A DNA stretch of 64,000 bases from Oopsacas minuta (GCA_024704765.1 JAKMXF010000033.1:434001-498000), one strand, 5' to 3'. Counted from the stretch's first letter, positions 18,226-33,800 are shown. The notes: a model not told the origin generated them from the sequence alone. A program made the numbers and translations.

Positions 18226-20502
18226 ATGGCGTCAAACACAGATTATACAAATACATACGCTCCTCTGCAATCTTTCCACAGATACGAGTTAAAGTCTTCA
18301 AAGAAAAGGGAGAGTACATTTCCAATTCCTTTTCCTAAGACTCCAGATGAAGTAAAAGCCCTCCTCAAATCTCCCGACCATAAAGCTAGGGATTTAATAA
18401 GTCGCAGTTTAAAGGCTCATAGGAATCCGTATGAAGCAATGATATTCCTATACGGGCTGTCAGGTGCTGGGAAATCAACCACTTTAAACCATTTATTTAA
18501 CACCAAACTCATTCCTACTTCTGACAGCAAATCTAGCACGACTGACGTCATAGAATACGTAGCAACCATGGATAGTATACGGTGGGACGTGACAGGTCTC
18601 AATATAGGATTTATTGATACCCCTGGCTGGGGTGATACCAGTGGGAGCGGGATTAATGATCTCGCGAATATCGAACATTTCCTAGTCTGCCATCCTTATC
18701 TAGACTCACAGTATCTTCATTTGAAATTCTACCCGAATATTGTCATGATTGTAGTACGAGCTGGAGATCCACGGATAACAGGATTTAATTCTCAGCTGTC
18801 TAAAATGTTACGAGTACTTTCTAAACTGAATATTGTCGATAAGATATGCCCTAATGTAATTATCGTGTTAACATGTGCCTTGTTTATTCGGCCACCGAAA
18901 AAGTATGTCGAGAAGAGAGATAATCAGATCCAAATAATCAAAAATTTAGTTAGACTTCATCTCGGTGTAGATCCCCCAGTTATAGTTATTGAGAATTTGG
19001 CAGAGGAGGAGGAATTGGAGAAAGTTGGAGATTGGACCTTGTTACCAGACGGTTCTAAACAGCCCCTTAATCTGTTTGATGCGATGATTACTCTCATGAA
19101 GCTCTCTGGTGATGAGATAGGAGTAGAGGCAGTGAGATTGATATTTAGTCAGGGGAACAGTATCCAAATTTGTGATAAACGACAAATCCCTTCTGAAGAT
19201 GGAATTTTTAAAGACATTCAATCAGCCCCCGACCCTGAAAAATGGGCGAAAATAATCGCGGAGGAATTTACAATTTTGAAGGAAACAGAAGTCTATAAAA
19301 CTATCTTGTACTGCTTAGAAGAAAAGAGTTTACCCAAATTATCCTCTCTTACTTATGAGAGTGTTCAGCCTCTTTTGCATAAATTACAAGAAATGAATCT
19401 TAGCAATGTTGTAGATTTGAGTTGTAGGAATATCGAAGAAATTAATCGCTTACTACATCCGTTTAAACTGACTAGAATAGAGAGGATTCTTTTATTTGAA
19501 TTATTTAAGGTTAGACCGTTAGAAAATTTGAAGGATATAGATCTACTGGGCTGTGGTTATCTCGCGTTAGATAATTTAAGAATACCAATAATCTCATCTA
19601 AAGTTTTGAAATATTGTTACGAAATAGGAACACATGTTCCTGAGATTTCTACATTCACTTCAAAAGGTAGATTACTTGTTCATTGCAGATGTGAATGGGT
19701 AAAAGAAAACATCTTTTCTACCAGAAAAGCAGTCGTATCGTTTGCGGTACAATACGAGTTATTCAGTCTTACTATTAGCTCCAAGCAGCTAACGTTTGAA
19801 CAGATGGAGAATAGCTTTATAAAAGCTGTCAGCTGTCTTCCTAATGATGTATTTGATCATTCTGATAAGAAAATCACTGATGCTTACAAATTCTTTATTG
19901 ATAAGTATGGTACTCAGTGTGTGATGGGGGTCAGCTATGGGGGAGAGATAAATGGGTCTATTAACCTACCTGAAAGTATAACAGAATTTAGCGGTGATAC
20001 CTACCAGATAACATTATTACTAAAAATATTCTTTGAAAATATCCAAAAAGGTTCGAATTTAACCAGGTTAGACTACGGTGCGATTATCGATGAAAACTCA
20101 ATGAGTATGTTCGAGAATATATGTGAATTACCCATTACGTGGAAAGGTGGCGAAGAGAAGTTTCATGCGTCCAGTCTTAAAAACCTATCTCCAATATTTT
20201 GGTCTTGCTGGGTCGATTCGTTATGTATGAAATTCGTACCATTACACAAAATTATACAATTTATTCCAATGCAGAATATTATTGCTATAATTCATTCTGA
20301 GAAGTACAATTCAATAACTAAGGCAATACAGGAACATCAACATGTAGTTGGGAAAGATAATCATATTTTGCATATTTCTGAGAATCCGGATAGACACGAA
20401 TGGGATTTTGTAGAATCTAAACAAATACCGAAGGATTATCGTAAATGGGCGACGGACAATGCTGTAACGAAGGATGGGAAATTTTCATGTTCAATTTTGT
20501 AA
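18226..20502 (+). CDS. P-loop GTPase - MACPF-like fusion, paralog 1, with C-terminal CaaX (CSIL)
   Basis: G1 GLSGAGKS, G3 DTPGWGD and hydrophobic strand IIVLT. MACPF-like motifs LGCGY, FIKAVSCLP, YKFFIDKYGTQ...YGG and WKGG...WVDSL. No signal peptide, no intron. Confidence 0.8.
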   Translation: MASNTDYTNTYAPLQSFHRYELKSSKKRESTFPIPFPKTPDEVKALLKSPDHKARDLISRSLKAHRNPYEAMIFLYGLSGAGKSTTLNHLFNTKLIPTSDSKSSTTDVIEYVATMDSIRWDVTGLNIGFIDTPGWGDTSGSGINDLANIEHFLVCHPYLDSQYLHLKFYPNIVMIVVRAGDPRITGFNSQLSKMLRVLSKLNIVDKICPNVIIVLTCALFIRPPKKYVEKRDNQIQIIKNLVRLHLGVDPPVIVIENLAEEEELEKVGDWTLLPDGSKQPLNLFDAMITLMKLSGDEIGVEAVRLIFSQGNSIQICDKRQIPSEDGIFKDIQSAPDPEKWAKIIAEEFTILKETEVYKTILYCLEEKSLPKLSSLTYESVQPLLHKLQEMNLSNVVDLSCRNIEEINRLLHPFKLTRIERILLFELFKVRPLENLKDIDLLGCGYLALDNLRIPIISSKVLKYCYEIGTHVPEISTFTSKGRLLVHCRCEWVKENIFSTRKAVVSFAVQYELFSLTISSKQLTFEQMENSFIKAVSCLPNDVFDHSDKKITDAYKFFIDKYGTQCVMGVSYGGEINGSINLPESITEFSGDTYQITLLLKIFFENIQKGSNLTRLDYGAIIDENSMSMFENICELPITWKGGEEKFHASSLKNLSPIFWSCWVDSLCMKFVPLHKIIQFIPMQNIIAIIHSEKYNSITKAIQEHQHVVGKDNHILHISENPDRHEWDFVESKQIPKDYRKWATDNAVTKDGKFSCSIL

Positions 20503-20613
20503 ATATATTTTGATACTCGTTATATTGTGAATATTTGCTGGAATTATTTTTATTGTTTGTTTGTTTAATTTTTCTATAAATAAGCTATTATGAAATATTT
20601 TATAATGACATTA

Positions 20614-30586: not shown

Positions 30587-30858
30587 TTGCTAATTGTGAC
30601 AACAATATATTTGATGCTATAAATCTACTACAGTGGAACGTTAATACGAAAATAACGGACAGTCAGATTTGTTCATATTAACCAGACTAATGCCAATTGA
30701 ATAACCAATCTAGGGACCGGATTTGATTTAAATCTTTTGTTTTTTATCCAGAAATTCTTATTTTTGAGGTTCCACTGCATAACTACCAATTAGAGTATTG
30801 AAAATCGCTACATATTAAATGCAAAATAAAAACACTAAAAAGTTCTCTCAAATATTAG

Positions 30859-33800
30859 TTAAATAATAAATGAATGAATGAAAGAAATTTTCATAGACTT
30901 AAGTACCTGATATGAATCTTGTAAAAATTGAGCATACCTGTGTATTTTTGCATCTCCATTAAAGTACTTATCAGCTGTTGCTCCCATTCCTATCTGCTCC
31001 AATAATCGCATAGGAAGGAATAGATTATGTCCAATTTGTTGAAGTGAGGTGAATTCTTTCAATGAAGCTTCTGGTAAACTAAATACGCTTGCAGCAATTC
31101 CATCAACAACTATGTAGCTGTTCATAGTGAAGGGAGCGTAGTATCCCTTGTGTGTGCAGGTGTCTATGTGTAGGACAGGCACTGACATGAGTGTATGAGA
31201 ATTTCCTCTCTCTTTCTGCTTCCCTTCCTCGTCCTCCTGTTGATGTGACGGAGAGGAAGAGGAGGGAGGAGACAGGAAGTGGATAGTGTCTCCCACTCTC
31301 AGCTGATGAGCTGGTACTGGTCTCTTGTTATCTCCAGTAAGGATGAGATGGTTAGCAGAGATGTGAAGGTGTCCGTGAGGATGTGTGATGTGTAGGAATG
31401 TGGCTGTGATGTGTGTGTCTCGATGTGCCCAGAGATACACTTTTGAGTAGACAGGTTTGTATGTAGTAGGATGTATGGATAACACATAATCTCCTATCTT
31501 CAATTCATCCATTCTAACTCTATTTCCTCCTTTCAATACTACACAAGCATTTCCTGGGAAACAAGAATTTTTTTGAGTTTGTAGAACCTTATCAGCAGCA
31601 TCTAACCTTGTCCATACTTCATCCAAATCTACTATTGATGTGTCTAATCTACCTATACTATCTCTATTTCTAATCACCGAAATTGAATGTCTATATTCAT
31701 TTTTCAGACTCTGAGCTATCTTATTGTTGGAATACAGCATGTTACATGCTTTCTGCAATTCTTCCCCTTTTGTTTTGTCGATTTTCTCCACAATATTGGA
31801 TATTGGTGATAGCGTGAAATCATCAGGATCAAATATTGGATTCTTGAAGATTGACTGTACCCACTTGTTCCACTTCTCATGGGTCAATTCTTTGAAATTA
31901 GGGCAATAGTGCCCCTGATCTCCCCCTGCAAATATCAATGGTACCGTGTTCAAATCGATATCATCTTCAAAAGGATTCTCCTCCAATTTGTCATCATCCT
32001 TGATCATCGATATTTTATGTACAATCATAGCACGAACTTGCTGTTCTCCAACATGTTGATTGGAAATTGAATTTATTGTTAAGTTACCAGAAAATCTTCC
32101 ACTTTCTATAGCTCCTTCTATTTCCCAATGTCCATATTTCCTGAGAAAATCTGTATAAGCTACATCTACTTGGTCTTTTGTATAAATTGCGTTATTTGGC
32201 AATTCCTTAATTGATTTTAGGAATTCTTTACTGTGCTTTATCTTTGCAAAATCTTTGTTTTTGACGAAAACACAAACTTTATGAATTATATCAAAGGCGT
32301 ATACCTTGTCATTAATGCCAGTGGTCAGTTCCATACACGATGCTTCTCCACATGATATTTCCGTAGACTGTAGCGGGATTAATTCTATTCCCCTTGGAAT
32401 ATATATCCCTATATTGTGATTGATGTCACAGTCCAGTGAGTTTATATCGAACATATTTGTAGATGATATCGTCTTCGTTTGCTTATTATATCCACAACCA
32501 ATTACCCGAGCTATTTCTTGGAAAGAACTGTGTTGCACTTTAAAAACTTCAAGTAAGATAATTTTATCTGTCTTGTTGAGTAGAAATGGTTTTAGCTCAT
32601 TCTCTATTTCTTGTAGCGTTCTTGCTTGAAGTTCTGCTAGTTTTGTAAATTGAGCTTCCTGCAGGTAGAAAAGCAGCGGAGTCATCTCTTGAAATCGAAT
32701 TACCCCTTTATTCAATTCTGTATACTCTCTAAGTTTTTGGGTAATTTCAGTGCTAACTAATAGTTGCAATTCTTTCATTAACATTTTATACCAATTAAGC
32801 TCGTGGTCATTTAGTTCAATTTCCCTGCCAATATTTACGCTATCCTTTGCTATTCTTCTACCTGACACTTTCAATTTAACTTCGGGATTCATGTGTTTGG
32901 GCAATTTTCCACTGAAATACATACGTACAGCCTCTCTGCCTATATCATCACCGTTCTCCTTCATCAGTGAGATCATGGCCTCGAATAGATTAATAGGTTG
33001 TTTCTCCTTGTCTGTTAGATAAGTCCATTCACCCGCTTTATCAAGGAGATTACCTTCAATGTCATTTTCAATCCATACTACACGTGATGGCACACTTAAA
33101 TATTTACGACACAATTCTTGTATTTCATTATTTTTAGTCACTTTCGTTTCTCTGTATCGTCCTTTGGGAATAGCGCCTGCATGTGTCAATACGAAGACAA
33201 CGTTAGGACGTACTCTATCAACAATCCCTAGCTTAGATACAGCTCTCAGCATGTATGCGCAATTAGAATATTCACCTCCCAGACGTTTTTCAACTGCTGA
33301 TACAACTATCAGTACTATGTTAGGATATATTGATAGATAACTAGAGCTTAAATGTGGGTGTTGTCGAGTGAATTTAGAAATAGTATTCAGATTGACTGCG
33401 TCTTGTATACTTCCATCAGTATCACTCCAGCCCGGGACATCTATAAACCCTATTTCTAGATTATGTATTTTGCAATCATCACTTGTCATATTTACGGCAT
33501 ACTCAGCAACATCTTTCGTACAAGATTGAGTATCAGAAGTACTTAAAAGATCTCTATTAAACAGATGATTTAGAGTAGAAGACTTCCCTGACCCTGTTAC
33601 ACCATATAGGAATATAATAGCCTCGTTGGATGCCCTGTGTGCCCTCAAGCTGTTACCAACCATGTTCATAGCTGGATGACTAACCCCCCTAAAGGCTAGT
33701 AGTCTAGCATCAGAGAGTGTAGCTGGTAGATGTAGGTAGGAATCTTTGGGAGGGTAACTTGTTGCGAAAGTGTCATCCTCCCCTATTATACTGTTATTTG

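Follow-up and report, generated by a model that had tools for sequence, protein, structure and literature searches.

Hog modules and CaaX boxes at a shared cysteine in a tandem GTPase-MACPF gene cluster of the glass sponge Oopsacas minuta: predicted alternative membrane-anchoring devices

The gene cluster

A tandem cluster of genes for proteins that combine a GTPase domain with a MACPF domain was analyzed in the genome of the glass sponge Oopsacas minuta (GCA_024704765.1; 61.5 Mb, 365 contigs). The stretch of DNA analyzed, here called the window, is 64,000 nucleotides long and corresponds to positions 434001-498000 of contig C33 (JAKMXF010000033.1); contigs of this genome are numbered in the same way below. 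Five big intronless open reading frames (ORFs), p1 to p5, make up the cluster, and the gene models are ORF-based. The coordinates are collected in Table 1. p1 and p2 end in the CaaX boxes CSIL and CFIF. p3, p4 and p5 lack a CaaX box and end in a Hint domain followed by a tail resembling the sterol recognition region (SRR) of Hedgehog, the two together forming a Hog module. The same division had been proposed in an earlier reading made from the sequence alone (the sequence-only reading), and it was borne out by the ORFs, the Pfam matches, the AlphaFold2 (AF2) models and the motifs. The span given in that reading, 20488-31563, runs exactly from the CaaX cysteine of p1 to the first cysteine of the Hint domain (Cys1) of p5. 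The ORF listing for p2 begins at a TTG (20803-20808), and the first ATG at 20809 (MARNS...) agrees with the N-termini of the orthologs.

Table 1. Positions of the five paralogs, their motifs and the flanking marker gene, counted from the first letter of the window
Feature	Position	Strand	Remark
Cyt-b5 domain gene	16827-17669	+	flanks the cluster; synteny marker
p1	18226-20502	+	758 amino acids; GTPase-MACPF, CaaX form
p1 G1 motif	18454-18477	+	GLSGAGKS
p1 MACPF signature	19906-19944	+	
p1 CaaX box	20488-20499	+	CSIL; stop codon 20500-20502
p2	20809-23103	+	764 amino acids counted from the first ATG; GTPase-MACPF, CaaX form
p2 linker motif	23047-23064	+	TR.AA
p2 CaaX box	23089-23100	+	CFIF
p3	23343-26762	-	1139 amino acids; GTPase-MACPF-pseudoHint-Hog
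p3 Hog module	23346-24035	-	Cys1 codon 24033-24035
p3 Hog, AHRD	23889-23900	-	His at the Hedgehog D46 site
p3 Hog, SANH	23820-23831	-	
p3 Hog, Val	within 23550-23567	-	Hedgehog C143 site
p3 SRR helix-1	23439-23468	-	
p3 SRR, IH.Y	23361-23384	-	
p3 pseudo-Hint	24036-24500	-	begins GFPQ; Gly in place of Cys1
p3 linker motif	24537-24557	-	TR.E; ahead of the pseudo-Hint
p4	27128-30586	-	1152 amino acids; GTPase-MACPF-pseudoHint-Hog
p4 Hog module	27131-27817	-	Cys1 codon 27815-27817
p4 Hog, AHRD	27671-27682	-	
p4 Hog, SANH	27602-27613	-	
p4 SRR	27221-27250 and 27140-27163	-	
p4 pseudo-Hint	27818-28252	-	begins GFPG; Gly for Cys1; second, weaker PF01079 stretch
p4 linker motif	28289-28309	-	TREYASE; ahead of the pseudo-Hint
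p5	30859-33882	-	1007 amino acids; GTPase-MACPF-Hog, without pseudo-Hint
p5 linker motif	31591-31611	-	TR.DA
p5 Hog module	30862-31563	-	Cys1 codon 31561-31563
p5 Hog, AHRD	31417-31428	-	
p5 Hog, SANH	31348-31359	-	
p5 SRR helix-1	31003-31032	-	H..F.P.R
p5 SRR, IHRY	30922-30945	-	

Domains and predicted topology

Pfam searches gave matches to P-loop GTPases of the MMR_HSR1/Septin/AIG1 type and to MACPF in p1-p5. The MACPF match (PF01823) scored 25-38 bits in 5/5 paralogs, above the cut-off of 21.5, and a stretch resembling the MACPF signature, Y-G-x-x-x(7-8)-G-G, was present in p1, p2 and p4. MMR_HSR1 was over its cut-off in p1, p2, p3 and p5, and the AIG1 score of 24 was under the cut-off of 27. 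The GTPase motifs G1 (G..G.GKS/T) and G3 (D.PG) were found in the paralogs. An AF2 model of p1 was obtained with a predicted local distance difference test (pLDDT) value of 79. Foldseek matched its MACPF part to C9, perforin, Mpf2Ba1 and MPEG-1, and the best matches of its GTPase part were Toc34/Toc33, with a template modelling score (TMt) of 0.58-0.66. The predicted layout is a Toc34/AIG1-like GTPase, a helical linker, a MACPF domain and a C-terminal membrane-anchoring device.

No signal peptide, transmembrane (TM) segment or N-terminal hydrophobic stretch was found in p1-p5. CaaX processing and the insertion of tail anchors act on cytosol-facing proteins only. Since members of the family end in CaaX boxes or tail anchors and a signal peptide is lacking, the GTPase-MACPF family would be cytosolic, and its Hog must therefore act in the cytosol.

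The Hog module of p3, p4 and p5

The Hint family PF01079 was matched in p3, p4 and p5 only, with E values of 1.7e-34, 2e-41 and 5.9e-30, respectively. The match starts at CFPG and the alignment reaches position 201-206 of the 213 positions of the model. The p5 Hog was modelled with AF2 (pLDDT 87.8); residues 1-162 form a Hint beta-core and residues 165-233 form helices. The best PDB matches of this model were 6tyy and 1at0, both Drosophila Hedgehog-C, and with a TMt of 0.87-0.88 they were better than the matches to inteins. Between two of the Hint beta-strands lies a Ser-rich and then Glu/Lys-rich insert (PPSSSS...EGKQKER), at about residues 100-122 of the p5 Hog and about 31198-31266 of the window, which is also found in p3 and p4. 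Its pLDDT of 54-59 in p5 predicts disorder, and the insert is not found in Hedgehog-C.

For residue counts, 46 Hog forms of the family were aligned to Hedgehog-C. Cys1 is present in 44/46. The TxxH motif of Hedgehog (T69, H72) is kept as S/T-x-x-H, with Ser in 34, Thr in 10 and His in 44 of the 46 forms; p3-p5 read SANH, where Ser for Thr is a conservative exchange. The general base of Hedgehog, Asp46 (D46), which serves the sterol hydroxyl, is not kept. Its site holds His in 44/46 Hogs, as part of AHRD in p3-p5. Hedgehog with the D46H exchange (PDB 6tyy) still autoprocesses in cells, whereas C143A and C143D do not, and C143 is needed for autoprocessing in cells by way of a branched intermediate (PMC12054796). 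A Cys at the C143 site, in the context SCYA or SCYC, was found in nine Hog forms, none of them from the glass-sponge clade, and in several subclades of sponges a Cys stands two residues before this site.

Residues H374, F377, P379 and R381, together with H433 and Y435 of the HWY motif, were found by mutagenesis to be needed for cholesterolysis by SHH (PMC7242414). The p5 tail carries GHNLFLPMRL and IHRY with the same spacing, and the consensus of the family, mussel homologs included, is H..F.P.R ... IH.Y. By its predicted fold and most of its motifs the Hog of p3-p5 is of the Hedgehog type, and its tail appears to be a true relative of the SRR.

The CaaX tails of p1 and p2

All full-length members of the clade of p1 and p2, 17/17 from several assemblies, end in C-x-[I/L/F]-[L/F/I], with Cys at position -4 and a variable residue at a1. 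Examples of these endings are CSIL, CTIL, CAIL, CIIL, CGLF, CKIF, CGIL, CKII, CILL, CVLF, CYIL, CTFI and CFFL. The clade is old and diverged, with an identity to p1 in the part upstream of the C-terminal device (the N-part) as low as about 34%. CaaX boxes with Leu or Phe at X are substrates of geranylgeranyltransferase type I (GGTase-I). The beta subunit of this enzyme was found on C288 (E 3e-102 to 1n4p_B), along with the beta subunits of farnesyltransferase (C210) and Rab geranylgeranyltransferase (C233), alpha subunits at two loci (C312, C222), an Rce1-like protease (C330) and isoprenylcysteine carboxyl methyltransferase (C321). The Oopsacas genome thus encodes the full CaaX-processing machinery. 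A CaaX box of the GGTase-I type, as proposed in the sequence-only reading, agrees with both the clade-wide conservation and the presence of these enzymes, and the conservation of the p1 and p2 boxes is judged from their sequences to be more than chance.

A shared cysteine and the history of replacement

When all forms were lined up on the Cys, a motif 'TR.EA(S)' was found 13-17 residues upstream of it in Hog forms and CaaX forms alike. The motif is also present in Hog forms from outside the glass sponges, whose cluster-mates are ctenophore and acoel proteins. Because TR.EA stands at the same distance in both forms, the CaaX Cys is positionally homologous to Cys1 of Hint. The CaaX forms would accordingly be former Hog forms in which the frame now ends three codons after Cys1. 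A search with tblastn (E up to 10) found no decayed Hint 3' of the stop codons of p1 and p2. The absence of a downstream Hint remnant suggests that the Hog in this lineage was deleted, and not merely stopped short of a visible remnant.

Two trees were used to follow the change. A tree of the N-parts of 38 sequences, calculated with a mixture model, placed every CaaX form in one clade (Shimodaira-Hasegawa-like approximate likelihood ratio test 99), so that one change between CaaX and Hog suffices. A broad tree of 103 full-length family members was calculated with LG+G4 in a quick search. Its glass-sponge clade (99) holds one CaaX clade of 17 sequences (96), and the remaining sponge subclades are all Hog forms. 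Hog forms also occur on the non-sponge side of the tree, the outgroup, where the cluster members come from Mytilus, Bolinopsis, Convolutriloba and Orchesella, and all of these outgroup Hogs except P0097 (Asp) have His at the D46 site. Since the CaaX clade is nested among Hog clades and the outgroup Hogs carry His, Hog would be the ancestral form, and p1 and p2 would descend from one Hog-to-CaaX replacement. As far as the sequences tell, this replacement was single and ancient, and it took place before the sampled glass sponges diverged. With a single CaaX clade in both trees, repeated toggling among the glass sponges was rejected.

ERZ20067936 and ERZ25072730 were treated as other, probably hexactinellid, assemblies. 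In two assemblies other than that of Oopsacas, a Cyt-b5 gene is followed by CaaX genes and then by Hog genes of the family, and the same Cyt-b5 neighbour is found in the window. In L002 two CaaX genes are followed by three Hog genes.

The Hog cassette and the pseudo-Hint

The DNA identity among p3, p4 and p5 is about 40-50% in the upstream part and rises to 97-100% from the Cys1 codon on. The stretch of high identity is about 430 nucleotides long for p5 and about 680 nucleotides for p3 and p4. Cassette identity is 98% within Oopsacas and 94% between two cassettes of assembly L002, compared with 76-78% between the two assemblies. Because identity within an assembly exceeds identity between assemblies, the Hog cassettes are under concerted evolution in each species. 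Both ends of contig C186 (7.5 kb) lie inside copies of the cassette. At 23390-24000 the k-mer depth is higher than in the flanks by a factor of about 10-40, which may mean that more copies are unassembled; the depths are summed over contigs and serve as a hint only.

Between orthologs of the p3, p4 and p5 subclades, the Hint core is 79-87% identical and the N-part 45-64%. This better conservation of the Hint core indicates that the Hog is under selection. The order is reversed in the C33b subclade, whose N-part is better conserved than its Hog.

In p3 and p4 the TR.EA linker is followed by a degenerate Hint with Gly for Cys1, a weak PF01079 match and no SRR, and then by a Hog cassette of the active type. 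Since TR.EA precedes this pseudo-Hint, the old Hint would have decayed in place, and a working-type Hog now sits behind it. The architecture with two Hint domains forms one clade of 17 sequences from several assemblies. A paralog of this pseudoHint-Hog type at L002:16633-20046 has an in-frame stop in the pseudo-Hint, and gene calling splits it into two genes, one of 814 and one of 322 amino acids. It may be a pseudogene or the result of an assembly error.

The wider family

A word-seeded search gave 35 relatives, and a full profile search gave 1072 representatives (E <= 1e-3). Outside the sponges, Hog forms were found in a ctenophore (Bolinopsis), an acoel (Convolutriloba), a springtail (Orchesella) and the mussel genus Mytilus, where one of them carries the annotation 'DHH'. 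Family proteins of two octocorals, Xenia and Dendronephthya, have a TM tail anchor at the C-terminus. Proteins noted among the non-sponge and wider family were P0051, P0078, P0059, P0072, P0074 and P0097. Among 116 rows spanning both domains, 50 end in Hog, 23 in CaaX, 15 in a TM tail and 28 in none of these; some of the last group are truncated models or have other C-terminal extensions.

The starred branches of the broad tree amount to at least three CaaX changes and six tail-anchor changes family-wide. P0105 and P0163 form a second CaaX group, and P0076, which stands beside a Hog form, represents a third. Across the family, CaaX boxes and TM tail anchors have thus come to occupy the same C-terminal position in independent events. 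The sequence-only reading had proposed that the family toggles between its two kinds of tail. This did not hold within the cluster, where one old Hog-to-CaaX change is found, but at the level of the superfamily it comes closer to what the broad tree contains.

In the Oopsacas genome, 14/14 matches of PF01079 lie in or directly after GTPase-MACPF genes, and no Hog outside the family was found by this search. The loci include C88:215245-216384, C33:609528-610145, C133:337289-341171, C45:18912-19511 and C186. The gene on C45 is split into a GTPase ORF of 684 amino acids and a separate Hog ORF of 286 amino acids.

Proposed function and alternative explanations

The explanation that we favour, with reserve, is that Hog is the ancestral lipid-anchoring device of the family and was replaced once by CaaX on the same Cys, both giving a C-terminally lipid-anchored cytosolic GTPase-MACPF protein. 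In the Hog forms, Hint would form a thioester at Cys1, which would then be attacked by a membrane lipid, most likely a sterol, recruited by the SRR. Hog would thereby be released, and a lipid ester would remain on the new C-terminus of the GTPase-MACPF part. In the p1 and p2 lineage of the glass sponges Hog would have been lost, and the CaaX box (X = L, F or I) would be geranylgeranylated by GGTase-I. Both forms would end as C-terminally lipid-anchored GTPase-MACPF proteins at the cytosolic face of a membrane. An anchoring function of Hog is the most economical assumption, because both of its replacements, CaaX and TM tail, serve membrane anchoring only. This natural swap suggests, short of proof, that Hog is a self-service membrane anchor.

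Several points weigh against this explanation. The site of Hedgehog C143, which forms the thioester of the branched intermediate, holds Val in p3-p5, with no Cys nearby; these Hogs would either rely on the classical mechanism, in which the Cys1 thioester is attacked directly, or do no more than cleave. The SRR helix-1 of p3 and p4 has Q and L instead of H and F, with P and R retained. An anchor is not universal, as 28/116 two-domain rows end in none of the three devices, and the broad tree, the product of a quick search, has only weak support at its deep nodes. To our knowledge, every proven cholesterolysis occurs in the secretory pathway and not in the cytosol. Finally, autocleavage, the lipid adduct, prenylation and the function in the cell are all predictions made from sequence. 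The claim of the sequence-only reading that both tails yield the same lipid-anchored product therefore stands in part. An anchor is favoured by the same Cys, by the kept Cys1, S/T-x-x-H and SRR, and by the TM tail as a third device, but the cholesterol adduct is unproven given His at the D46 site and Val at the C143 site. As a whole, that interpretation is partly supported.

An alternative of modest probability, and the best of those considered, is that the Hog of p3-p5 is a self-cleaving switch for release or activation. By hydrolysis or transfer to a small thiol it would drop an inhibitory C-terminal domain and add no lipid, and the CaaX forms would be a distinct, constitutively membrane-bound subfamily. 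Val at the C143 site, His at the D46 site and the diverged SRR helix-1 of p3 and p4 would fit such a switch, and many non-Hedgehog Hint domains cleave only (PMC7242414). However, the SRR residues for sterol transfer are kept family-wide, from ctenophore to mussel, the devices that replace Hog at the same Cys serve no purpose other than membrane anchoring, and Hedgehog with D46H retains its activity (PMC12054796).

It is improbable that the Hint is catalytically dead and acts as a module for binding or oligomerization, in the manner of the upstream pseudo-Hint of p3 and p4. The existence of this Cys1-less domain and the lack of a C143 equivalent would allow it, but real decay, as seen in the pseudo-Hint, brings Gly for Cys1 and a weak Pfam score, whereas each of Cys1, His and S/T-x-x-H is found in 44/46 Hogs and, in the p3, p4 and p5 subclades, conservation is higher in the Hint core than in the N-part. 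Marginally less probable still is the view that CSIL and CFIF are accidental, unprenylated stubs of a truncated Hint. The Hint starts with CF.., the CaaX Cys is the former Cys1, and p2 and P0060 still read CF.. today. Yet 17/17 members of an old and diverged clade keep Cys at -4, I/L/F at a2 and L/F/I at X, CaaX ends have arisen independently in other parts of the family, no Hint remnant follows either stop, and the CaaX enzymes are present. Least probable of all is entry into the secretory route by an unrecognized way, with Hog acting in the lumen of the endoplasmic reticulum as in Hedgehog: the lumen or the extracellular space is where every proven Hog cholesterolysis takes place and where most MACPF proteins are found, and the majority of Hog proteins bear signal peptides (PMC2362128), but p1-p5 have neither a signal peptide nor a TM segment, their GTPase domain is nucleotide-dependent, their sister forms use cytosol-only CaaX boxes or tail anchors, and GTPase-Hog proteins without a signal peptide have precedents in GmGIN1 (PMC2362128) and the amphioxus AIG1-HINT protein (PMC12373286).

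Covalent modification by cholesterol is proven for Hedgehog ligands only and has been described as singular there (PMC7242414). The question of what non-Hedgehog Hog domains attach has stood open since the coining of the term adduct recognition region (ARR) (PMC2362128). If Hog anchors the sponge proteins by a sterol, as proposed, they would provide the first natural evidence of protein sterylation beyond Hedgehog ligands, and Hog, CaaX and tail anchor would be functionally interchangeable. Evolution would here have done a swap experiment, in which the same cargo carries at the same Cys a Hog, a CaaX box of the geranylgeranyl type or a tail anchor. The matched paralogs of one locus make an anchoring role of Hog directly testable, and a natural Hint of the D46H type without C143 bears on the current model of Hedgehog autoprocessing.

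A broader picture is offered tentatively, as a possibility that falls short of being favoured. The family would consist of ancient, animal-wide, cytosolic MACPF effectors gated by their GTPase, with Hog as a self-catalyzed sterol anchor that was repeatedly swapped at the same Cys for a prenyl group or a TM tail. A probable role is the formation of GTPase-gated pores, in cell-autonomous defence or in cell death; the tandem expansion, the fast-diverging N-parts and an analogy to the CaaX-bearing guanylate-binding proteins (GBPs) point to it. Members of the family come from early-branching as well as bilaterian animals, and they are plausible pore-forming effectors of the cell-autonomous kind.

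Other features of the window

The window further contains a sortilin/Vps10 gene (192-2585, - strand), an NHL-repeat gene (7371-8567, + strand), a weak glypican-like ORF (35433-37043, + strand) and an ORF with a TRAF-type MATH domain (40288-42186, - strand); no evidence ties any of these to the cluster. An Rfam scan of the window gave no match. The sequence runs containing the stretch are unlabelled Logan contigs of one sample. Intergenic DNA is evenly covered in them, and the contigs therefore behave as DNA and are silent on expression and transcript ends.

Comparison with known systems

No description of the GTPase-MACPF(-Hog) family, or of a replacement of Hog by CaaX, was found in the searchable literature, where only the architectures of GmGIN1 and amphioxus AIG1-HINT surfaced. 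The C-terminal part of Hedgehog (Hint and SRR; 1AT0, 6TYY) shares with the sponge Hog the fold, CFPG with Cys1, S/T-x-x-H and the SRR-like helix-loop-helix with H..F.P.R and H.Y. In contrast to Hedgehog, the sponge proteins lack a signal peptide and a Hedge domain and carry a GTPase-MACPF cargo, and their Hog differs by the exchanges at the D46 and, in p3-p5, C143 sites and by the disordered Ser/Glu-rich insert in Hint. GmGIN1 of Glomus mosseae (PMC2362128) and the amphioxus CARD-AIG1-HINT protein (PMC12373286) likewise combine an AIG1-type GTPase with a C-terminal Hog/Hint and have no signal peptide. They differ from the sponge proteins in having no MACPF domain, and no sister forms with CaaX or tail anchor have been reported for them. 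The sponge proteins belong to a GTPase-MACPF lineage of their own, which is animal-wide and distinct from these two proteins.

Toc34 is the best structural match of the sponge GTPase, and a C-terminal membrane anchor is recurrent in the AIG1/Toc clade. GIMAP1 and GIMAP5 are tail-anchored GTPases of the AIG1 type. GBP1, GBP2 and GBP5 are comparable by analogy only. They are cytosolic GTPases directed to membranes by a C-terminal CaaX box and encoded in tandem, fast-evolving clusters, but they are dynamin-like and not Toc34/AIG1-like, have no pore-forming domain, and no homology to them is claimed. Perforin-2/MPEG1, one of the Foldseek matches, is a membrane-anchored MACPF protein like those proposed here. 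MPEG1 is lumenal and has a signal peptide. In the sponge family the GTPase and the MACPF domain share one chain.

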